A stretch of 64,000 nucleotides of DNA from Heteronotia binoei. Its lineage: Eukaryota. Positions within the stretch are counted from its first letter, which is position 1, and each line of letters starts with the position of its first letter. Both the position numbers and the translations under genes were made by a program. Positions 231 to 33,865 of this stretch are shown here, piece after piece. The notes beneath the pieces are model-generated. The model was not told the DNA's origin and searched no databases. It worked only from the letters and a program-made list of their open reading frames with translations. The stretch is from assembly GCF_032191835.1 (NCBI RefSeq), contig NC_083243.1, positions 170,252,001 through 170,316,000 on the forward strand, read 5' to 3'.

Positions 231-763
231 TGTTAGAGTATTTTGCACGCAGCAGAAGAGCTGAAGGAGAGGGACAGGCAAAACACAGGAATTAATAGAC
301 AAGAGAAACAGCTGTATTCAATGGTAGATATATTTACCAGGAATAGTATCCAATATTCAGAGTCGTTGCCAGGCCAAGGTCATACACAGTAATCAGTACA
401 CACTTCAGTAGATAACAGTATACAGCAGTAAGTATACACAGCACGATCCAAGCACAGTAGCATAGGATCCAACACCAGCAGTGATCGCTGCCACCCAGAT
501 AGCGGGCCTCACAGAACCCACAATCCTTACAGGCAGACTGAGCAAGCTCACTGAGCTTCCCTAAGTACACATACCAATCATCAGGGTTGCATCAGCTCTG
601 TGAGTCAGCACAAAGCCTAATTACAGGTGAGGTCATCCCACCTTACCTCAGTAACAGGTAACAGCTGGATCATGATGCAGCATGACTCAGCATGACATTG
701 CAGAAACAACATTACTATTACTAAGATGGAGTCAGTCAGCCATTTTAGGACTGAGTTCCAACA
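231..763 (-). repeat. 3' LTR of copia element
   Basis: TGTTAGAGTA...GAGTTCCAACA; matches 4841-5373 block for block (offset 4610). Confidence 0.97.
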
Positions 764-773
764 TTCTCCTCTT
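764..773 (-). other. Polypurine tract of copia element (AAGAGGAGAA)
   Basis: Purine run directly before the 3' LTR on the minus strand; it overlaps the gag-pol stop codon TAA (772-774). Confidence 0.85.
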
Positions 774-3700
774 AATAGTTCTGTTCGTTTCTCAATCCGA
801 GCCTTTTACAGTGCTCGTTATGCTTTTCCATAGTCTGGGGTTTGGTAAACATATCTGCCGTATTGTGGCCAGTATCACAATACCTTATGTTTATCAACCC
901 TTCCATGATACATGATCTGACATTTTGGTACCGTATGTCAGTGTACCTATTCCTTGTCTTTACTCCTTCCGCTTTTGCAATCTCAATCACAGCTTGATTG
1001 TCTTCCAGAACTTCAACAGGCTTCTCTGCCTCTATATGCAGGTCCTTTAGTAGCTGTCTAAACCATTCTACCTCAGTACAAGCAGTAGAAAGGGCGCAGA
1101 ACTCTGCTTCTGTGGTGGACAAGGCAACCACACGCTGCTTTTGTGTCTTCCAGCATACTAATACCTCTCCCAAATATATGGAAAGACCTGTTGTTGACTT
1201 TCTGGTTTCACAGTCACTTGCAAAACTTGCATCTGTATACACTTTCAGTGCTAGCTCCCCCCTAGGTTCGATATAAAGACACCAGTCAGCAGTGTTCTTT
1301 AAATATCTCAACACTCGCTTAGCAGCAATCCAGTGATTCTGCTTAGGGTTCTGGGTAGCTCTTGCCAACAGATTACAGGCTACTGATATGTCTGGCCGTG
1401 TCCAATTACTGATATAGCTCAGACTACCAATTAACGACCTGTACATTTCAACATTACATGGTGGGCTATCTGTAACATCATTTACAAAGCCAGTCACCAT
1501 AGGGGTTGAAACAGTTTTGCAATCAGTCATCTTGTACTTGTCCAACAAATCTATGATTTTAGGGTTTTGTGACAGTTTAAAACCTTGTGTAGTTTTTGCA
1601 ATATCTACACCCACATAGGTCTGTACAGTACCAAGATTTCTCAGTTTAAACTTCTTACTTAAGGCTGAAACAATATCATCTGTTTGTTTCTTTGTCTTGG
1701 TTAGAATCCCCAAGTCATCCACAAAAGTAAGAACAATACATCGTGTTTCACCATTTCCCTTGGTAAACACACATGGATCAGCAATGCTCTGGGTAAACCC
1801 TAGCTCTTTAAGTGTACCCACTAGGCATTTTGACCATTGATGACCACTTTGCTGTAGACCATACAAGCTCTTATTTAGCAACCAGTATCCCTTTCCAGTA
1901 CCAGGAATACCTTCTGGTCTCTTTAAATAAATTTGGTGCTCCAAATTAGCATTTAGGTATGCCACACAGACATCCAAATGGGTAAAATGGAGTTTTTCTC
2001 TGGCTGCCACAGTTAACGCAGTCAGAAGTGAACTGCTCTTTAACGTTGGAGCAAACACTTCGTCATAAGTCTCATTAGTCTGTCTGCAACCTTGTGCTAC
2101 AAGCCTCGCCTTATACTTTTTCCCCCCAGACTGGTCTGTTTTCACCTTGTATACCCATCTACTGCCTATGGGTTTTACACCAGCAGGTACAGTATCAGTC
2201 TCAACATAAACATTTAAATGTTTCAGGGAAGAAAGTTCATCGTCCATAGCAGCCTTCCAGTTACACTGCTCTTCCTTGGACAAAGAGAAAATGTCAGTAT
2301 ATTTCTCAGGCTCATGTATAGCAGACATTACAGGACTAAATCTCTCAGGAGCTCTTCTTTCACGTGTAGATCTCCTCAATGCAGGCTCATCAGTTGGCAC
2401 ATTCCTCCCGGATAATTCCTCACGAGTAGGCTTCTCCTCCATCTCCTCCTCGTCAGGCATCTCTTCTTTTGGGGTTAACTCAGCCGCCTCTCCCTCCTCT
2501 GGGTTGCTAGGCATCGAGCTGACTTGTAACCGGATTCCTTGGTCATCCTCAGGACAGAACGCTGGCGATTGGGTGCAACGATCCCAGCCCTCTGATCTCT
2601 CCAGAAACGTGGCTGAAGCACTAATCACCACCTCACGACTGTCGAGCGTGCCAAAACGATAACAGCTCCCGTTTCTCTCATACCCGAGAAACCTCATACG
2701 TCTAGCCTTCAGTTGGCCTTTACGTCTGAGCTGTTGAGGAATATGAACAAAAGCTGTAACTCCAAATACATGCAAATTTGCCAAGTTAGTTACCTTGTCA
2801 TGCCATAGGCTTGCTGGTATTTTGCCAGTAGATGAACACCAAACTCTGTTCAGGTTGTAGTTGGCACAGCACATAGCCTCTGCCCAAAATCTCCAGGGCA
2901 TATCTGCATCACGTAACATACACTGGCACATGTCTTGCAATGTACGGCCTCTTCTCTCACAAAAAGCATTATGGGTAGGTCTGTACGGAGCAGTCAAACG
3001 GTGCTCAATCCCAAGCTCTGCAAACAAACTTTGAAAACGTTTATTAACAAATTCCGAGCCTCTATCAGAAATAATGCATGCAGGCACATTTCCAGTTTTT
3101 CTCTTAACAAACCTTAGCCAATTCTGCACATTTTGAAAGGTTTCAGTTTTAGCTTTCAACAGGTAAACAAAACCATACCTTGAATAGTGATCTTCTATAC
3201 TTAAGACATATTTGGCCCCGCCCACTGACTCCTTAAAGGGCCCTATCAGGTCTAAGAACACTAGGTCAAGAGGTTTCTTACTAGTAAATTTACTTGGAGT
3301 ACGCACAGGAGCTTTTGTAGACTTTACCAGCTTGCAGATTTCACAGTCAAGAAATTCCTTGCAAGGTTTAAGACTAAGGCCTTCTGCCTGTTCCACAGTC
3401 TTCTTTAGAGCAGGAAAACCAGCATGGCCTAATTTCCTGTGTAAAAGATGACAGCAATTATCATGCACTGGTTTATTTACACAGACGTTATTACACGTTT
3501 GTACCTTGGTATGCAAGAAGTATAAATCTTCCTTCAGCATTGCCTTTACACACACACCGTCACTGGTCCTCAGCTCACAGCACGAGGTGTCAAATTGCAG
3601 TTTGAAACCTTCCCTGCACAGAGCAGACACAGACAGCAGATTCATCTTAAGTGAAGGAACAAAACCCATTTGAAGCTCCTTCCTTAGGCTTGGCAGGAAC

Positions 3701-4695
3701 ACTTTCCCTCTGCCAAAAACAGTTGCCTTAACTCCATCTGCTAAAACAACAGACTGGTTATCAACAGGTGTGTAAGTAGTAAACAAACTCCTCTCTCTAC
3801 AGAGGTTCTCCGACGCTCCGCTGTCAATTAGGAAAGATTGAGTGTGGTTAGTTGACTTACCAGTAGTAACGAGATGCACATTACCACTCTTATCAGCAGA
3901 CCTCATTCCAGACCGTCTCTCTTTCCCTTTCTGGCCTTGACAATTCCTAAACAAATGTCTGGATGAGCCACACCGGAAGGATTTCTTCCTTACAGCCATT
4001 ACATTACCTGTTTGACAGTCAGGATCCTCCTTAACAGTAAATCCACTGCCCCTCTCTGGCTTACAGACAGGCTTTCTCTCCGCACGTAGAGAGGAATTGG
4101 ACTGTCTCTTGCCATATTCATCAAGAAGCCGTCCAGTTACGACGTTCATGGTCAACCCTGTCTCAGGCAAACCCTCCAGGCTCGTTATCACAGCGTCATA
4201 TGATGCATCTAAAGAACTTAAAAGTATGCACACCTCCTGTGATTCAGAAAACATTTGGTTATGCTCTCTTAGCTCTAGAAACATCCTACGCATAGACTCT
4301 ATATGAGATAACATATCAGCATTAGCTGCCAGCCTGGTATGCAGAAGCTTCCTCACCAAACGAATCTGAGAACCGACAGTTCCTCGGACGTAAATTTCCT
4401 TCAAAGCATTCCAGCAGTCATTAGCCGTCTCCAGTCCTGCTATATGCACCAGCTGGGAGTCGTCTAGAGAAAGACCTATTAAAGACAAAGCCTTAACATC
4501 CTTTTTACGCAAAAGGTCTGCAGCTTTTCTGTCTTCAGCAGCTGCCAACAACCCCCGTAAAGGAGCAGCCACCACCTCCCACAGCTCTTGGTGCTTTAAT
4601 AACAGACTGACCTTCTGGGACCACGTAGCATAGTTAGTCCCATTCAGCTTAGTAATGCTGAGCCCAGAGAAGGAAACAACATTTGCAGCTTCCAT
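772..4695 (-). CDS. Copia Gag-Pol polyprotein, 1307 aa, single uninterrupted ORF
   Basis: Gag knuckle-like SFRCGSSRHLFRNC. Protease FLIDSGAS. Integrase HRKLGH...CEIC, D(LIGP), D(RGSEF)-x35-E and GKGY-type motif. RT YKARLVAQG and FVDD. RNase H YTDASF, TTEAEF, LEDNQA, TADMFTK. Confidence 0.97.
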   Translation of the reverse strand: MEAANVVSFSGLSITKLNGTNYATWSQKVSLLLKHQELWEVVAAPLRGLLAAAEDRKAADLLRKKDVKALSLIGLSLDDSQLVHIAGLETANDCWNALKEIYVRGTVGSQIRLVRKLLHTRLAANADMLSHIESMRRMFLELREHNQMFSESQEVCILLSSLDASYDAVITSLEGLPETGLTMNVVTGRLLDEYGKRQSNSSLRAERKPVCKPERGSGFTVKEDPDCQTGNVMAVRKKSFRCGSSRHLFRNCQGQKGKERRSGMRSADKSGNVHLVTTGKSTNHTQSFLIDSGASENLCRERSLFTTYTPVDNQSVVLADGVKATVFGRGKVFLPSLRKELQMGFVPSLKMNLLSVSALCREGFKLQFDTSCCELRTSDGVCVKAMLKEDLYFLHTKVQTCNNVCVNKPVHDNCCHLLHRKLGHAGFPALKKTVEQAEGLSLKPCKEFLDCEICKLVKSTKAPVRTPSKFTSKKPLDLVFLDLIGPFKESVGGAKYVLSIEDHYSRYGFVYLLKAKTETFQNVQNWLRFVKRKTGNVPACIISDRGSEFVNKRFQSLFAELGIEHRLTAPYRPTHNAFCERRGRTLQDMCQCMLRDADMPWRFWAEAMCCANYNLNRVWCSSTGKIPASLWHDKVTNLANLHVFGVTAFVHIPQQLRRKGQLKARRMRFLGYERNGSCYRFGTLDSREVVISASATFLERSEGWDRCTQSPAFCPEDDQGIRLQVSSMPSNPEEGEAAELTPKEEMPDEEEMEEKPTREELSGRNVPTDEPALRRSTRERRAPERFSPVMSAIHEPEKYTDIFSLSKEEQCNWKAAMDDELSSLKHLNVYVETDTVPAGVKPIGSRWVYKVKTDQSGGKKYKARLVAQGCRQTNETYDEVFAPTLKSSSLLTALTVAAREKLHFTHLDVCVAYLNANLEHQIYLKRPEGIPGTGKGYWLLNKSLYGLQQSGHQWSKCLVGTLKELGFTQSIADPCVFTKGNGETRCIVLTFVDDLGILTKTKKQTDDIVSALSKKFKLRNLGTVQTYVGVDIAKTTQGFKLSQNPKIIDLLDKYKMTDCKTVSTPMVTGFVNDVTDSPPCNVEMYRSLIGSLSYISNWTRPDISVACNLLARATQNPKQNHWIAAKRVLRYLKNTADWCLYIEPRGELALKVYTDASFASDCETRKSTTGLSIYLGEVLVCWKTQKQRVVALSTTEAEFCALSTACTEVEWFRQLLKDLHIEAEKPVEVLEDNQAVIEIAKAEGVKTRNRYTDIRYQNVRSCIMEGLINIRYCDTGHNTADMFTKPQTMEKHNEHCKRLGLRNEQNY

Positions 4696-4807
4696 CTCTG
4701 CTACTTATCACTGGACACCTGGGCAACTTGGCAGTCTGCCTCCGTCTCTTCCAAAACACTGTGTTGCCTCCTCTGTCTTCAGAACAGCAGCACCTCTAGA
4801 AACACTG

Positions 4808-4838
4808 GGCGCAGCGGAAGCGTGCTGGGCCCATAACC
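4808..4838 (-). other. Primer-binding site complementary to the 5' half of initiator tRNA-Met
   Basis: The + strand reads GGCGCAGCGGAAGCGTGCTGGGCCCATAACC, i.e. nt 9-39 of vertebrate tRNA-iMet as recalled; it lies 2 nt inside the 5' LTR. Confidence 0.93.
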
Positions 4839-4840
4839 AA

Positions 4841-5373
4841 TGTTAGAGTATTTTGCACGCAGCAGAAGAGCTGAAGGAGAGGGACAGGCAAAACACAGGA
4901 ATTAATAGACAAGAGAAACAGCTGTATTCAATGGTAGATATATTTACCAGGAATAGTATCCAATATTCAGAGTCGTTGCCAGGCCAAGGTCATACACAGT
5001 AATCAGTACACACTTCAGTAGATAACAGTATACAGCAGTAAGTATACACAGCACGATCCAAGCACAGTAGCATAGGATCCAACACCAGCAGTGATCGCTG
5101 CCACCCAGATAGCGGGCCTCACAGAACCCACAATCCTTACAGGCAGACTGAGCAAGCTCACTGAGCTTCCCTAAGTACACATACCAATCATCAGGGTTGC
5201 ATCAGCTCTGTGAGTCAGCACAAAGCCTAATTACAGGTGAGGTCATCCCACCTTACCTCAGTAACAGGTAACAGCTGGATCATGATGCAGCATGACTCAG
5301 CATGACATTGCAGAAACAACATTACTATTACTAAGATGGAGTCAGTCAGCCATTTTAGGACTGAGTTCCAACA
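4841..5373 (-). repeat. 5' LTR of copia element
   Basis: Identical by eye to 231-763; followed on the minus strand by the PBS. Confidence 0.97.
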
Positions 5374-6702
5374 TATTTAAATTCAATTATAAAGGTACCC
5401 CTAACCAATCAAAGTTCAGTGTCTTTTTCTTCTCATTCATGTTAAAAAATTGTCCAATGTCTTTTTACGTTCCACTCTTGCTCTATATATCTTTTAAATT
5501 TCTTCCACTCATTTTTAAACACCTCCAAATCACAGTCTCTTAAAGTTCTTGTTAATTTATCCATCTCACTCCACGATAAAACTTTCACAATCCAATCCCA
5601 TTTCTCTGGTATTTTTTCTTGCTTCCACAACTGTGCATACAATGTCCTAGCAGCTGAGAGCAAGTACCAAATTAAAGTCCTGTCTTCTTTTTGAAATTTT
5701 TCTATTTGTAATCCTAGCAGAAAAGTCTCTGCAACTTTCTTAAAGTCATAGCCCAAAATTTTAGAGATTTCTTGTTGTATCATTCGCCAAAACTTTTTCG
5801 CTTTTTCACAAGTCCACCACATATGAAAAAAAGAACCCTCATGATGTTTACATTTCCAACATCTATCCGAACATCTTTTTACTCATCTTTGCCAGTTTCT
5901 TCGGAGTCATATACCACCTATACATCATTTTAAAACAGTTCTCCTTAATATTCTGACATGTTGATATCTTCATCGAGTTCTTCCAAAGATACTCCCAAGT
6001 GTCCATTTGAATTTCTCTGTTCACATTGATTGCCCATTTGAGATTTTACTACTTCCTCTTCTGTAGACCATTTCAATAATAATTTATATACTTTCGATAT
6101 TAATTTTTCATTGTCTCCAAGCAGAACCCTTTCCAGTTTTGTTTGCTCACATCTAATTCCATCAGACTTAATATCATTTTCCATCAGACTTTTTATTTGT
6201 TGCATTTGAAACCAGTCATATTTATTACTTAGCTCTTCTGCAGATTTTAATTCAACTTTCTCACCTTGAATCTTTAGCAACTGATTGTATGACATCGCTC
6301 TTTCTTCCTCAGATTCAGCTGTTATTTTTATTACTTCTGCTGGCACTATCCAGAGCGGCTTCCTCTCATCACCATATGTCTTATATTTTATCCAAGTATT
6401 TAGTAAGCTGTTTCTAATATAGTGGTGAGAAAAAAGACCATCCATCTTATTTTTCCCATAATACAAATACGCGTGCCAGCCGAATTTATTCCCATGAGCT
6501 TCTAACCGTAAAGGTTTTTTTATCTAACAGCATTATCCAATCTTCAGAGATAATTGGATACTCATTGGTGGAAACAGGAAGTTGGACTAGGTGGAGCACC
6601 ATTGTCTAATCCATCAGGGCTGTTAGTTCTATCCATCGGAACTAGGTCTGAATGTGGGAAATGTATTACTCCAGCTAAACAAGCCCTCAGGCAGTATTTT
6701 AT

Positions 6703-15195: not shown

Positions 15196-18100
15196 ATGGG
15201 CTCTCCAGCTGCAAATCCCAAGATTCTGTATCGGAATTCCCGCCTCCTTCGTATGGTGTTCCTGCAGCTCCATCGGCAACAGAGGGCTGACTTATTTTGT
15301 GATGTTGTCCTGCAAGCAGAAGGTAATTGTCTCGCAACTAATAATAGGGAAAGGGTGCTGCGGGGGGGGGGGGTGGACTTGGTGCCACATCACCTTGACA
15401 ATCTCTGCGCTGGGTCTGTGAATTCTAAGTATTAAGATGTGTGAAAGACTCACAGCTGAAATTTTGATATTGGCTCTTAAAAATGTCAAGTGTTGTTCTA
15501 GTCCTAACTAGTAGCTTGACTGCATAGGTTGCAAAAATATCCCTAATTCATGTTGTTAGAGTTGTGGTTTTCTATAGAAAGTGATGTGTGCCCTTTAGTT
15601 GTGGTTTAGCTCCCAAATTGTTTTCAGTGCCATGGCTTAGCCTTGACACATTTGTATTAAAATTGCCTCTGAGCATTCTCATTACTGAATAAGTACAGTC
15701 TGTACCCAGTCCTCTGGCATTAGTGAGAAGGGCTTGAAAGGCAAAGAGTATAACGTCCATGTTAGCATGAGATGTTACCTCTAATTTTTTACATTATGCT
15801 CTACATGGTTGAAGTGGCTCGAACTTATATAGCTCAGTCTCATCAGATTTGAGAAGCTAAGCAGAGTGTAACTCTACTAGTTCTCCTTAATTTCAACTGA
15901 AGAGAGAGATAAATATGTGTTGAACTCTTCTGTTGAAGTTAGGAGGGAGTTTATTGTTTTTAACTTCTAGGACTGTTACTTTTGTGTGCCTTGACTGTAG
16001 TAATGGGTAGGATATTAATGGAACTTGCTTATTAGGCAAGTGGTGTTTTTGGTTTGTAACATTTCAGAGCCAGTGTGATGTAGTGATCAGAGTGTCAGAT
16101 TAGGAACTTGGAGACCCAGGTTCAGGCCCTACTCTGCTATGGAAACGTGCTGGTTTACCTTGGGCAAATCATTCTTTTGTAGCCTAATCTACCCCATAGG
16201 GTCATTGTGAGGATATAAAGTTGATGTATTGAGATTAATGTAAGCAACTTTGGGTTCATATTGGGGAGAACAGTGGAATATAAATAAATTCCTGCCCCTC
16301 GAAGATACAGGAACACAAACTGGAGTCTTTTTCATAAGCAAAATTTGGTGAAACAAATTGAAGCATATTTCTCTTAGGAAAAAGTGTACCTGTGCAAGTA
16401 TACACATTTAAATAATTTATAGGCCATCCTGTACAGTGGGTTATTTTTATTAGCAGCAGTTTTCTCAGAACTTTGTGGTGGGTATGGGTATAGGGGAGGA
16501 TGGGATTAGTTTAACTTTTAAAGTATATTTTTACAGATGCAGAAAGAGTTATAGGAGCAAGTAATGATACATAACTGAGCTCTGCACCTACGCATGTAAA
16601 ACAAAACTGTCAAATTATAATGTGTTTATATGTAAGGAGGATTAAATGCGGTACAACTTAACGTATAAACAGGAAGGAGTTGCTTGCTGCTTGGAAAAGA
16701 AGTGCCTGCAAAATAGCACTTGAGAAGTCCCAAGGCAATAGTTTATTGGGGGCTGGAGCACCAGAGGGCCAGGTCATGGGGGGGAACAACCTTTGTCAGG
16801 AGAAGTTTTGAAGGTAGCAGTACATCCAGGGTTATTTGCTGACACAGTAGCCACTAATGATGATGTTATTTACAGGAGAGGCTGTTCCTGCACACTGTTG
16901 TATCCTGTCAGCCTGCAGCCCCTTCTTCACAGAGCGTTTGGAGCGTGAGATGCCTCCCAAGGGACATAAGGTTGTGCTGGAGCTCCGGGGACTGAAGATT
17001 GGGCCACTGCGTAAGCTGGTGGATTTCCTCTACACCTCTGAGATGGAAGTGTCCCGGGAAGAAGCCCAGGATGTTCTTGCAGCTGCCCGGCAGCTTCAGG
17101 TGTCGGAGCTAGAATCTCTACAGCTAGAGGGAGGAAAGCTGGTAAAAAAAGCACTGGGCCGGCGTTTGAACCGGGAGTGCCTGCAGTTGTCCAGTCCTGT
17201 GTCCATTCCAGAGGAAAATCTGATGCAGTCTCTTCCTGCCTCTCGTGTTAGGTGTCTGACATCCCACCTACTTGCAAGTAGGCAGCAGACAGCACTGCAG
17301 CATCCATGCACCAAGGAAACAGGGAACAGTAGCAGTGCTAGCCAGAAAGAGACTGTCAAGGAAAAATCGGTCATTAAGAGTGAAGACAAACCAGCAATTA
17401 AGAGTGAAGACAAATACCAGATGCCTGCAGATGCATCAGCTATGGCAGAGTTCCTAACACCCAAAGCTAAAAAGCATAGTGTAGGTGCAGTAAAGGATAT
17501 AATGGGCAATGAGGAAACTGGCAATCTGTCAACAGAACAGGCCAGGCCCAGGGTTAAGCAAGCCATGGCTGGCTTGCAAGAGTCAAAAAAGATCAAGCTG
17601 AGCCGCCCAAAACTCTCGTCACCGCCTTTACCCATGCCATGCACCCCTGAAGACCATGGTGTTATTGTTTCCCATAAAATCTCAAAGTCCACTAGACGCC
17701 TTTGGCGTAAGAAAAGTTCTCCTGTGAAGGATGACACCAAAGAAGCTGAAGTGCTTAGGCATTTGCATGGCTTCCTGAGTCCCTCACTGCTTCCAAAAGC
17801 TACTAAGGGTAGAAAACGCAGCGCCAGTGAGCCAGCTCCGAGCATAAACCATCCCCAAGAGGCTGGTCAGGTTCACCGAGTGAAGCTTAGGAAGGTTATT
17901 AATGGCAGTTGCTGGGAGGTGGTGCAAGAGCCATCTGCTGCACATCCCATAAGAGCAGCAGATTCTGTGCATGTTTTGACAGAGGCCTCCCCACCTCAAC
18001 CCAAATATACAGAGCAAGAGGTAACAGCCACACATCAGCAAGCTAGCTCTACTAAACATCTGCTTGCAAAAGCAGAGAGTTCATCTTTCACTGGGAAGAG

Positions 18101-18911
18101 TCTGGTAGGAAAGGCTGGGAGTGCTGTGACCTTAGCTGACAGAGGCTCATACCAGCTGCTCATGCGAGACCAATTAGCTGAGGGTGAAGGATATGACAGT
18201 CTGGCTTCTACTGGGGAGCTGGAACACATGCTAGATTTGCTTTTGGCCGATGATGATGCTGTTGAGGCGTCCCAAGACACCATTGTTCCAGAGGGCATGC
18301 CTGCCTCAGGCCCTGCACCAAAGACAAGTAACAGTCCATTAGGAAATGCTGGAGCTGAGGGAAAATGCTGGTGCTCTGCAGGAGTGTGTGTTTGTCCACA
18401 GTGGATCAAGGAAGAAAAGAGTCCCCCCCAAGGAGAGGAGGGGTGTGCTGCCTCCAAGATCAGTGAAGGAACTCCTGGTTTGACAAATGGAGTTCCCTTT
18501 CCGGACCCTGTTCATAGTTGCCTTCCACTTTCGACGTATCAATCCAGTAATGATTGCCTTCCGTTATGCAGCCTTACTTCTCCCCAGCAGGAAAGTTTGA
18601 CAGCTCATCACCGGTTGCCTGAGTTGGCAAATGGGGCTACAAGACTTACTGCCCCCTTGCTCAGCCATGAGAACCAAGGGCTTCCATCCTGTGGAGAGGC
18701 TACCTCAAGTGCAGAAACAAAGCCACAACCTCAGGCATTCCTAAGGAATCCCTTGCAGCATCACTTGGACTGTAAGCTGCTTCCCCAGTTAGTCATCTTA
18801 GAAGAGGATGAGATAGATGTTGGTGGGGTAGAGGATTTCTTCCTTAATAATGAATGTGTCCGGCCAGATACCTCTCCAATGTCTGAAAATGAGGTGGATA
18901 TTATGAACTAG
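15196..18911 (+). CDS. BTBD18: BTB/POZ domain-containing protein 18; 2 coding exons, 720 aa
   Basis: Exons 15196-15322 (MGSPAANPKILYRNSRLLRMVFLQLHRQQRADLFCDVVLQAE) and 16876-18911 (GEAVPAHCCILSACSPFFTERLERE...LESLQLEGGKLVKK) are joined in frame by a GT-AG intron. The N-terminus matches human BTBD18 as recalled; synteny with SELENOH agrees. Confidence 0.93.
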
Positions 18912-29937: not shown

Positions 29938-32900
29938 TGTTGGAATACAAGCTATGCACATTCCAGCCATTATAGAGTTAACTGTTTGTTTACCTGATAG
30001 AGGAAGTGATGTATTGTAACCTAAATCCAATTGTGAGCTGAGTCTTCTTTACCGGCGAAAGATATAAAAACAACATTGGTCAGAAAGGATGTTAGGTGTG
30101 AATGCTTTGATCTTGTATGCAAGCTGAATTGCTCTTCTTCCCGGCGACACCCATTGGGCAAGTGGAAAATAGCAACCAACAGAAACGTGATTTTAAATCT
30201 GCAAAGCCAGCAACCAAGCCTGAGAATGTGTCTGATAGGAATCCTAAATATGCAATTACTGAATCAAATGCAAATCTTGAGAATCATTGGATCATAGATT
30301 CTGGAACTTATTATCATGTCTGTAAAGATAAGAAATATTTTGTGGAATTGGATGAGAACAACTCATTTTGTGGAATTGGATGAGAACAACTGCCCAAAAT
30401 TAGAGCAAGCCAATGGACAAATACTGAAAGTTGAAGGAAGTGGGACTGTAATCTTAAATGTTATGGATGAAAGTCAAGAAATTAAAAAGGTTACACTAAC
30501 AGTGTGTGCATATGCCCCTGAGGCAGTCAGCAACTTAGTCTCAACAAAGAGAATTATCAGAAGAAATCATGAGATTGTACTCAAAAAGGACAATGGAAAT
30601 ATTGTTGATCCTGAATCTGGAACTGAATTTATGCTTGATGTAGTTGACAGTCTTCATTATCTAAAGCTTGCATGATGATGATGATGTGCAAAATGATGCT
30701 GAAAATATTTCTGATGTAACAAAAGTTGTTGGGTCAGTGTATAATACAATGCAATCTGTATGTAAGCATAAATGTCTTCTTAAATGGCACATAACTATGG
30801 GGCACCGGAGTGTGCAAAGTGTGCAAAATTGTTGAAAGAATGTAATGTTGATGTTATTGATTGTGATCAAATGCAATCTGGTTGTGATATGTTTAAAGGC
30901 AAAAGGTACCGCCCAAGATACATGGGCAAAAATACGGTACACAATGAACAATTTCTAGCGATGGTATTCTCAGATATTGCAGGGCTAATCAAAGAATTGG
31001 CTGGTGCAAGCAGGTACTTTTTAACGTTTATAGAAGCTAAGTCAAGATATGTCTATGTCTACTTAATTAAAAGCAAAGATCAAGTCTTTGACAAATTTAA
31101 ATCCTATGTTGCTGCTGTGAGAAATAAATCTGGTAAAGTTCCAGAAGTATTGTTCACAGACAATGGAACTGAACAGAAGCAGTGAGTTCCAAAGGTTTAT
31201 GGAACAATAAGGCATTCAACATAAAACTACTACACCCTATTCACCACAGCAGAATGGTGCAGCTGAGAGACCTAACCGAACAATTATGGAAATGGCCAGA
31301 TCAATGCTAATACAATCTGGACTGCCAGATTATACATGGGGTGAAGCTGTAAATACTGCAGTTTATTTGCATAACAGAATTCCATCCAAAGTAACTAATA
31401 AATCACCGTTTGAGATTTGGTATGGCAAACGACCCGGTTTGAAACATTTAAGACCTTTTGGTTGCAAAGCATACGTGTTTATACCTAAGGAGAAAAGGGG
31501 CAAACTAGACCCCAGAGCAGAACTTGGTATTCTTGTGGGCTATGCTAATGGTGGAAGAGGATACAGAATCTTAGACCCTAATGCATATACTGTCAAAGAA
31601 TGCAATGTGGTATATATAGATGGCAACAGTGTTTTGCAAGCTCCTATGCAAGCTGAATCCACAGTACAGAATCCTATAGAGGATCTTACCTTCAGTGAAT
31701 TTGCTATTTGGGAACCTGCAGAGACCACCTGTGAGCAGGCAGGTCCACTTTCACAAGAAAGCAATGAATCAGAAAGGGAAGCAGGAAGTCCAAGAGAAGC
31801 AGAGACAACCATAGTTACTGTGAGAAAGTCAGCAAGGAGCAACAAAGGCATACCACCGCCAAGACTTGGAATTTGTGCAACAGTACAACCTGTCAAAGAA
31901 CCCTCAACTTGGGAGATAAATAAATCAACTACCAGATCCAGAAAGAAAGAAATGGATGGATGCAATGAATGATGAAATGAAGTCTTTACATGACAAGCAA
32001 GCTTGGACACTTGCAAACTTACCTCCTGAAAGAACAGCTATTGGTTGTAAATGGATACTAAAGTAAAATACAATCCTGATGGAAGTGTGGATCGATACAA
32101 AGCACGTTTAGTAGCAAAAGGATACAGGCAAGAACAAGGAATTGACTATACAGAGACTTTTGCACCTGTCATAAGTCATGTTGCGTTCAGAATACTTCTA
32201 ACAATTGCAGCCTCCAAAGGCATGCAAGTTGAACACGTGGACATTAAAACAACTTTCCTCAATGGAGACTTAACAGAGGAAATCTACAAGGAACAACCTG
32301 AAGGATCTGAAGACTCTGGAAAGGAAAAACTTGTGTGTAAACTTCAAAAAGGAATTTATGGATTAAAACAAGCCGCAAGAGGTTGGTCGGATAAGCTGAC
32401 AGAACTACTAAAGAAGCAAGAATTTCAACAAGGGAAATCAGAACCCTGTTTGTTTACAAGACTAAAAAATGGACAATACCAGGACATATTGTCTTACGTT
32501 GACGATCTGATTTTATGTTGCTACAACAAGAAGGACATCAAAGAAATTGCTGATGAGCTAAATAAAGATGTGGCAGTCAAACAACTGGGAGACATAAAAC
32601 ATTACCTTGGAATACAAATTGAAAGAGCTGAAGACAGACGTTTTCTGCTGAACCAAAACCACAAAATTATGGACTTTGTTCAATCCATGGGAATAAAGAA
32701 ACATGGAAACATTAGTACACCACTTGATCCAGCATACTTAACTTTGAAAGAAGGAAAATTGCTTGAAAACAATCGTGAGTATAGAGAAGCAACTGGAAAA
32801 CTACTGTACTTAAACAGAATCTCGAGACCAGATATTTCTACTGCTGTTGGAATCTTGCGTAGAAAGAAAAGTTCACAAGTTCACTATATTACCAGATTGG

Positions 32901-33865
32901 AATGCCATAAAGAGACTGCTGACTACAAATTACTAATTTCAGCATGTGACAACCCAAGACTAGTAGTCTACATGGACGCCAACTATGGGAGAAATGAAGG
33001 AGATGGAAAATCAACAAGTGGAAATATATTCTTCTATGAAGATAGTGTGATTGACTGGAACACTAAGAAACAAAAGATTGTAGCTCAATCTACTGCTGAA
33101 GCTGAATGTGTGTCTGCTCAAAGGGCATGCAATGAACTGGAATGGATTATTTTTCTTCTTAAGGAATTTGGAATAGAGGAACCTAAACCAGTACTCATGT
33201 TTGAAGACAACCAAGCATGCATAAACATATGCAAAGCTGAGAACATAAAGCTAGACAACAAACATATTGTCATCAAGTGTTTACTTGTGCAAGAGATGAT
33301 TAAAGGACTGATTGAATTACAATACTGCCCTACTGAAGAAATGACATCATGACGAAGCCGCTTGACAGACTGAAGTTTGAACAACTACGTGAAAGTATGA
33401 ACTTGATAGAAATTGCTAATGACTGAAATGTTACATAACTTGAGAAGGGGTTTGTTAGAATACAAGCTATGCACATTCCAGCTATTATAGAGTTAACTGT
33501 TTACCTGATAGAGGAAGTGATGTATTGTAACCTAAACCCAATTGTGAGCTGAGTCTTCTTTACCCGTGAAAGATGTAAACACAGCATTGGTCAGAAAAGC
33601 TGTTAGGTGTGAAATGCTTTGATCTTGTATGCAAGCTGAATTGCTCTTCTTCCTGGCGAAATGCTCTTTGGGAAGAAGAACTGTTAGATGTAGCCATGTA
33701 GAGGACACACATACTTAGACTAGCTGGTATGCTAAATTGTTTTTTTTTATCCCAAGTACCCTATCCTGATGTTTTCTAGTAAACTTTACTTCTTTTGATA
33801 AGCTTAAGCCTCGACTCCAATTATTGCCACTCCAAACCTCTGAATTCAACGTATATTTCCCATCA
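29938..33865 (+). mobile_element. Degenerate Ty1/copia element, a different family from 231-5373
   Basis: LTR homology between 29938-30149 and 33453-33661. PPT GAGAAGGGG at 33442-33450. Broken ORFs carry protease WIIDSG, integrase FTDNGTE/AERPNRT, RT YKARLVAKG and YVDD, and RNase H YMDANY/FEDNQA. Probable TSD CTCAG (29933-29937) / CACAG (33866-33870); the right end is inferred. Confidence 0.9.

Follow-up and report, generated by a model that had tools for sequence, protein, structure and literature searches.

Long half-tRNA primer-binding sites in Ty1/copia retrotransposons: a 31-nt putative site in a gecko element and its counterparts in metagenomes

Several Ty1/copia retrotransposons prime reverse transcription from an internally cut transfer RNA (tRNA) instead of from the intact 3' end of the molecule. 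The element described here lies on the minus strand at positions 231-5373 of a 64-kb stretch of the genome of the gecko Heteronotia binoei (64,000 nucleotides of contig NC_083243.1; hereafter the window). In Drosophila copia (Kikuchi et al. 1986, as presented in PMC10275265 and PMC5371799), the primer-binding site (PBS) lies by the 5' long terminal repeat (LTR), is directed to an internal part of initiator tRNA-Met (tRNA-iMet) and ends at nucleotide (nt) 39 of that tRNA, and the window element shares these three features. According to the same accounts the Drosophila site covers only the anticodon stem-loop in about 14 nt, GGTTATGGGCCCAG, which are the same first 14 nt as in the related families compared here, whereas the site in the window is 31 nt long, extends through the D arm to G9 and follows a 2-nt spacer. 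Half-tRNA priming in yeast Ty5 is attributed to Ke et al. 1999 in the passages of PMC10886601 and PMC5371799 that cite it. In Candida albicans, the copia-type element Tca2/pCal (LTR gamma; Goodwin and Poulter 2000) is credited in the account given by PMC4139406 with an 'extensive' PBS for an internal tRNA region and is, to the extent of that account, a partial published precedent for a long site of this kind; it differs from the window element in its tRNA, Arg(UCU) instead of iMet, and in its fungal host. Half-tRNA sites have also been recorded for Osser, Bryco, Gymco-II, Bianca and Puccinia Copia and Helenus, in copia lineages only, and the 3'-truncated tRNAs of plant and fungal copia elements include iMet and also Ile, Tyr and Asp (PMC6317226, PMC10886601); sites of about 30 nt are not mentioned in these two surveys, and the Helenus internal sequences in the supplement of PMC10886601 match the site of the window for 15-16 nt. 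In reviews the PBS is put at 18 nt for retroviruses and at 8-18 nt for retrotransposons (PMC7773854), and a perfect 31-nt site on an intact vertebrate copia element exceeds both figures. Sequence and keyword searches of a literature library returned no description of a half-tRNA PBS of about 30 nt. The half-tRNA PBS of copia elements is a known device, present here in an unusually long form that recurs across eukaryotic copia elements and has a regular inner limit at nt 8-10.

A 31-nt site at the 5' LTR of the window element

Read on the plus strand, positions 4808-4838 of the window are GGCGCAGCGGAAGCGTGCTGGGCCCATAACC. This sequence is identical to nt 9-39 of human tRNA-iMet, which is printed in PMC8216282 as AGCAGAGT (nt 1-8), the same 31 letters (nt 9-39) and CAGAGG; the initiator tRNAs of mouse and human are stated to be identical (PMC11347157). 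Nucleotides are counted sequentially here; the standard numbering, which skips position 17, puts the outer end of the match at position 40. On the tRNA the match spans the D arm and the anticodon stem-loop and takes in two bases at the beginning of the 3' strand of the anticodon stem, where its outer end lies; it stops on both sides, position 4807 being G against U8 and position 4839 A against C40. Since the plus strand has the sense of the tRNA and the element lies on the minus strand, the element carries the tRNA complement, as a PBS must. In element-strand order, the 5' LTR (4841-5373, minus strand) is followed by the spacer TT (4839-4840; AA on the plus strand), between the terminal CA of the LTR and the PBS, and then by GGTTATGGGCCCAGCACGCTTCCGCTGCGCC, the complement of the tRNA stretch. 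The first-pass annotation of this DNA, made from the letters alone, had placed nt 9-39 of tRNA-iMet here, two nt from the 5' LTR, and the exact match to the human sequence with its non-matching flanks bears this out.

The 31-nt sequence is unique in the 64-kb window at up to 3 mismatches, and the number of occurrences expected from shuffled sequence is 0. Probing the 64-kb window with 14-mers and 15-mers revealed no second, degraded copy of the PBS, and ARAGORN found no tRNA gene in it. A chance match or a fragment of a tRNA gene can therefore be excluded, given that 0 matches are expected, that there is no tRNA gene and no Rfam hit, and that the sequence sits at the exact position of a PBS. 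Priming by the 3' end of a full-length tRNA is likewise excluded, because the complement of the tRNA-iMet 3' end is absent near the LTR. The predicted duplex energy is -72.3 kcal/mol for the 31 bp as opposed to -27.6 kcal/mol for 14 bp.

The element thus has an internal tRNA-iMet site at its 5' LTR that ends at nt 39 and lacks a PBS for the CCA end, as in half-tRNA priming of the copia/Ty5 type. It departs from that type in length, with 31 nt in place of the approximately 14-15 nt that cover the anticodon stem-loop only. The PBS of Ty5 is reportedly short as well, unlike that of the window element. Taken together, positions 4808-4838 very probably constitute the minus-strand PBS of a Ty1/copia element primed by a 5' fragment of tRNA-iMet.

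The element itself is intact. Its two LTRs, the 5' copy at 4841-5373 and its direct-repeat partner, the 3' copy, at 231-763 (both minus strand), are 533 bp long, begin with TG, end with CA and are 100% identical, and the insertion is flanked by a target-site duplication TATTT (226-230 and 5374-5378). A polypurine tract, AAGAGGAGAA (764-773, minus strand), adjoins the 3' LTR and overlaps the stop codon of a single open reading frame (ORF) of 1307 aa (772-4695, minus strand), which encodes a polyprotein of gag, protease (PR) and integrase (IN) as well as reverse transcriptase/RNase H (RT/RH). Its Pfam domains follow the copia order, namely Retrotran_gag_2 (residues 31-201), Pol_BBD (288-364), gag_pre-integrs, rve (474-573), SH3_retrovirus and RVT_2 (836-1067), where Pol_BBD is a beta barrel of the aspartic-protease type. 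The RVT_2 polyprotein order, together with the TG...CA LTRs, the 5-bp duplication and the polypurine tract by the 3' LTR, places the element in Ty1/copia. With its identical LTRs the element is very young and recently inserted; it is apparently active. The predicted fold of the leader RNA (4696-4900, minus strand) is unremarkable (z = 0.63).

Short and long sites among copia elements

Searches of public protein libraries yielded no close (squamate) kin of the polyprotein, the best whole-protein identity being 39% in a word search and 41% in an exhaustive representative search. The relatives compared are therefore seven copia families at 28-45% protein identity, with no squamate or other vertebrate copia element among them, whose DNA is represented by loci L001, L002-L007, L008, L009-L011, L012-L013 and L130-L131; in locus L129 the PBS motif was not found. 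In all seven families a site starting with GGTTATGGG stands directly after the LTR end (...ACA or ...ATA), and in most of them it is completed to the 14 nt given above for Drosophila copia, the complement of nt 26-39. Because this sequence follows the LTR across the seven related families, both the termination of the site at nt 39 and priming by a cut tRNA-iMet are family traits. Place, orientation and first 14 nt are those of the window element, which agrees with the earlier assignment of the site to a copia element using an internally cut tRNA-iMet. The length is 13-14 nt in these nearest relatives, and the contrast with a site of about 14 nt that the first-pass annotation had drawn is thereby confirmed. 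The LTR-PBS spacer is absent in most relatives and is AT or A in a few metagenome elements.

In three of the relatives, pieces of D-arm complement follow the short site after an insertion of 1-2 nt opposite tRNA position 26 (CACGCT at L009:185-205, CAC.CTT at L012:2808-2830 and CCAGC..GCTTC at L001:323-347). These pieces could be the remains of a decayed long site or the product of a slip at a modified G26.

We then scanned a metagenome collection with the first 19 nt of the site, allowing any preceding base but G, which drops tRNA genes with C40. The scan yielded 115 stretches that fall into 52 clusters by their flanks. A few of these clusters (L044, L060, L084 and L099) are genuine tRNA-Met(CAT) genes, as called by ARAGORN, in which base 40 is a variant one, and the clusters other than tRNA genes have ...ACA before the site, the signature of a retroelement. 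Downstream of the site in many of them, copia coding sequence lies in the same orientation, with full-length polyproteins in L048, L061 and L121. In 35 clusters the site extends across the D loop and reaches sequence complementary to the D stem's 5' strand, with perfect matches of 27-32 nt. As a control, 24 chance 14-mers in phage-like contigs (viral_contigs scan) extend to no more than 16 nt.

The D-loop letters of the long sites occur in four variants, three of which are matched by tRNA-iMet genes recovered in the same scan (L060 for the T variant, L084 for the A variant and L014 for a longer loop), while the fourth is the mammalian form present in the window. L014 and the elements that carry its variant come from the same lake-metagenome series (contig names Ga03079xx), and the tRNA-gene matches L044, L060, L084, L099 and L014 all differ from the mammalian sequence. 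Given the match between D-loop variants and tRNA-iMet genes, the complementarity is to each host's own tRNA.

To place short and long forms relative to each other, a maximum-likelihood tree was built from the RT/RNase H region of 16 elements, leaving out rows with fewer than about 400 aligned residues and near-duplicate loci. The window element is sister to L001 (100/99 support, 45% identity), whose site is broken. Elsewhere on the tree, the long-site element L061 is sister to the short-site pair L002 and L008, and the long-site L100 is sister to the short-site L012. The well-supported branches of the tree cannot be reconciled with fewer than four changes between short and long sites, so that PBS length is labile and the long state is either recurrent or repeatedly lost, and is not the mark of one clade. 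Long half-tRNA sites recur across copia lineages, and the uniqueness that the first-pass annotation had implied for the window element is not upheld. A long site in more than 30 lineages points to a recurrent form of half-tRNA priming that has been overlooked. There is a consequence for annotation as well: such sites will be missed or cut short by PBS finders that compare 8-18 nt with the 3' ends of tRNAs.

The inner end of long sites and its possible causes

Among the 35 clusters with long sites, the last tRNA base paired is nt 13 in 1 cluster, nt 12 in 5, nt 11 in 7, nt 10 in 15 (the mode), nt 9 in 2 (to which the window element is added) and nt 8 in 5, and in none of the 35 does pairing proceed beyond nt 8. 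Extension from nt 10 to nt 9 is seen in 8 of 23 elements, near the chance expectation of 25%; from G9 the pairing goes on to U8 in 5 of these 8 (chance 25%), and 0 of these 5 reach nt 7. The pattern is one of a main pile-up at G10, a minor U8 class and a hard limit before the acceptor stem, and the window element ends between the two classes. Within the G10-ending clusters, the base opposite position 9 is A in 8 of 15 (L018, L023, L109, L021, L033, L064, L071 and L074; the base after ...CTGCGC), which is not clearly above base composition, and 4 of those 8 have a second A after it, in a position to pair with U8. The A opposite position 9 may be a mismatch that is tolerated or written at a 1-methylguanosine at this position (m1G9).

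Such a pattern could arise from the replication cycle as follows. Reverse transcription would be primed by a 5' fragment of tRNA-iMet and not by its CCA end, as in Drosophila copia and yeast Ty5, with the 3'-OH of the primer at nt 39 in the 3' strand of the anticodon stem; in the lineage of the window element, pairing would take in the anticodon stem-loop and all of the D arm, up to G9. PBS length would then equal the length of primer copied by the element's RT during synthesis of plus-strand strong-stop DNA, and since second strand transfer would demand that the copied stretch match the PBS, the inner end of the site would mark the point where copying of the primer halts. The likely halt would be m1G9, the alternative being an acceptor stem that is still paired. 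A block at position 26 would produce the 14-nt class, and read-through to m1G9 would produce a site ending at G10.

The proposal follows the logic put forward for the 18-nt PBS of retroviruses, in which methylation on the Watson-Crick face stops RT (PMC13191261, PMC8599865); there, the primer is the 3' end of the tRNA and the stop is m1A58, whereas for the window element a 5' fragment and m1G9 are proposed. In retroviruses, modifications on the tRNA halt RT, which sets the 3' end of plus-strand strong-stop DNA and leaves it perfectly complementary to the PBS for second strand transfer (PMC13191261). Both m1G and m2,2G are among the main barriers to RT in tRNA (PMC8062790). The tRNA-iMet of mouse and human contains m1G, m2G, t6A, m7G, D, m5C and m1A and no m2,2G, and its m1G in mammals is at position 9, written by TRMT10A (PMC11347157).

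That the inner PBS boundary is set by m1G9 is a reading we hold tentatively. The modal end at G10 is what an m1G9 block predicts. A more general proposition, that the PBS of half-tRNA-primed copia elements is copied anew from the primer in every cycle and that its length records which RT-blocking modification comes first on the fragment of the host's initiator tRNA, appears rather unlikely. If it were true, sites would be about 14 nt long where position 26 blocks and about 30 nt long where copying reaches m1G9, on a tRNA-iMet with m2G and without m2,2G; the repeated switches between short and long sites on the copia tree would follow the modification of the tRNA in the host, and the geometry of retrotransposon replication would be determined by enzymes of the TRMT10A type.

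A number of observations weigh against these interpretations or narrow them. The C of the window element that pairs with G9 lies one base past a strict m1G9 block, and the five clusters that reach U8 indicate that position 9 is no absolute stop. Thirteen further clusters end at 19-26 nt, lengths that a model with two stops, at position 26 or 9, does not predict. The scan needs at least 19 nt and skips sites that reach nt 40, and it therefore provides neither a frequency of long forms nor a measure of the outer end; some of the 35 clusters may in addition share ancestry. The 31-nt identity of the window site was scored against mammalian tRNA-iMet. Priming from nt 39 in the window element would follow by homology with copia and Ty5.

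With the same PBS and the same half-tRNA primer, the inner limit could instead be structural: nt 1-7 are held in the acceptor stem by pairing with nt 66-72 and nt 8-39 are free to anneal, such that selection for stable and specific annealing, or for unfolding of the fragment, would lengthen the site up to the structural limit. We regard this as a realistic possibility, without thinking it probable. Several features speak for it: no retroelement site goes beyond U8 and five clusters end exactly there, U8 is included in 5 of the 8 elements that pair with G9, above the 25% expected by chance, and the window site itself includes G9. Between lineages, moreover, site length forms a continuum from 13 to 32 nt and changes frequently, which is how a quantity open to selection should behave, and a 31-bp duplex is far more stable than one of 14 bp. 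The acceptor stem, however, leaves the mode at G10 unexplained (15 clusters against 5 at U8). RTs are able to displace a 7-bp stem, which also counts against a purely structural limit. In retroviruses, PBS length is fixed by an RT stop and not by the strength of annealing (PMC13191261). The first-pass annotation had also considered that the inner boundary fits a block at m1G9: the G10 mode in 35 clusters and the absence of sites past U8 speak for its view, and the inclusion of G9 in the window site, together with an acceptor stem that explains the limit, detracts from it. With either cause, an inner limit at nt 8-10 ties tRNA core modification (m1G9, TRMT10A) or tRNA structure to retroelement replication in a testable way.

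The remaining explanations concern the function of the additional length. Extra tRNA sequence might have been captured neutrally in one recent cycle, with only the outer 14 nt or so mattering, and it is true that the nearest relatives function with 13-14 nt, that the window element is very young, with identical LTRs, and that broken D-arm-like remnants persist in the short-PBS elements L001, L009 and L012, as if captures decay; yet perfect sites of 27-32 nt are found in 35 clusters, several with intact polyproteins, and a neutral tract is not expected to end so regularly at nt 8-12, which makes such a capture improbable. We give still less credit, and very little in all, to the idea that the long site serves or suffers pairing with non-priming 5' halves of tRNA-iMet that act as host inhibitors or silencing guides. 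The complementarity to nt 9-39 is perfect, and tRNA fragments that compete at the PBS have a precedent in Schorn et al. 2017, as far as the citation in PMC10275265 conveys it, the halves being likened to fragments of the tRNA 3' end by which LTR elements are blocked in the mouse; selection, however, would shorten such a target instead of lengthening it, and the site lies exactly at the required place for a PBS. The role of tRNA halves as silencing guides, which the first-pass annotation had raised, is speculative.

The dependence of the element on production of tRNA halves, also put forward in the first-pass annotation, is better expressed as a need for a 3'-OH at nt 39 than as reliance on the known tRNA-half pathway. 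Classical tRNA halves induced by stress terminate within the anticodon loop and not at nt 39, carry a cyclic phosphate there and would be unable to prime.

Additional features of the window and of the scanned contigs

Upstream of the PBS, in U5, the window element carries a candidate motif for pairing with nt 1-7 of tRNA-iMet (4861-4867, minus strand; six Watson-Crick pairs and one G-U), which is weak and possibly due to chance; the letters TCTGCT stand 28 nt upstream of the PBS. The complement of nt 1-7 or 1-8 of tRNA-iMet measures 6 nt in the window element, and 8 nt in L100 and 7 nt in L088, where it is located 38 nt upstream of the PBS. Enrichment of the motif over the 35 long-PBS elements is weak (p 0.04-0.09).

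A second, older copia element lies at 29960-33660 (plus strand) of the window, with LTRs of about 190 bp that are 93% identical over the aligned core and with ORFs that match SH3_retrovirus and RVT_2. A tblastn search with the young element aligns aa 442-1280 only, at 32% identity, and the gag-PR part is therefore missing or decayed. The tRNA-iMet half site was not seen after the left LTR of this older element. The window also contains a 684-aa ORF at 16857-18911 (plus strand) with an N-terminal BTB/POZ domain (Pfam E 1.7e-13); the ORF probably corresponds to one large host-gene exon.

Two of the metagenome loci have an unusual arrangement. L073 contains, at about 1583-1660 (plus strand) and within a tRNA cluster (Ile, Pro, Thr, Met), a truncated initiator-like gene in which nt 1-39 equal the mammalian 5' half and are fused to the T arm and acceptor strand without nt 40-48; it is followed by a T run and receives no ARAGORN call. 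In L052 (2128-2191), two copies of the site, of 19-25 nt, face each other on the two strands with about 44 nt between them; a similar LTR-like end precedes each copy, and the whole resembles either two elements placed head to head or a palindromic rearrangement.
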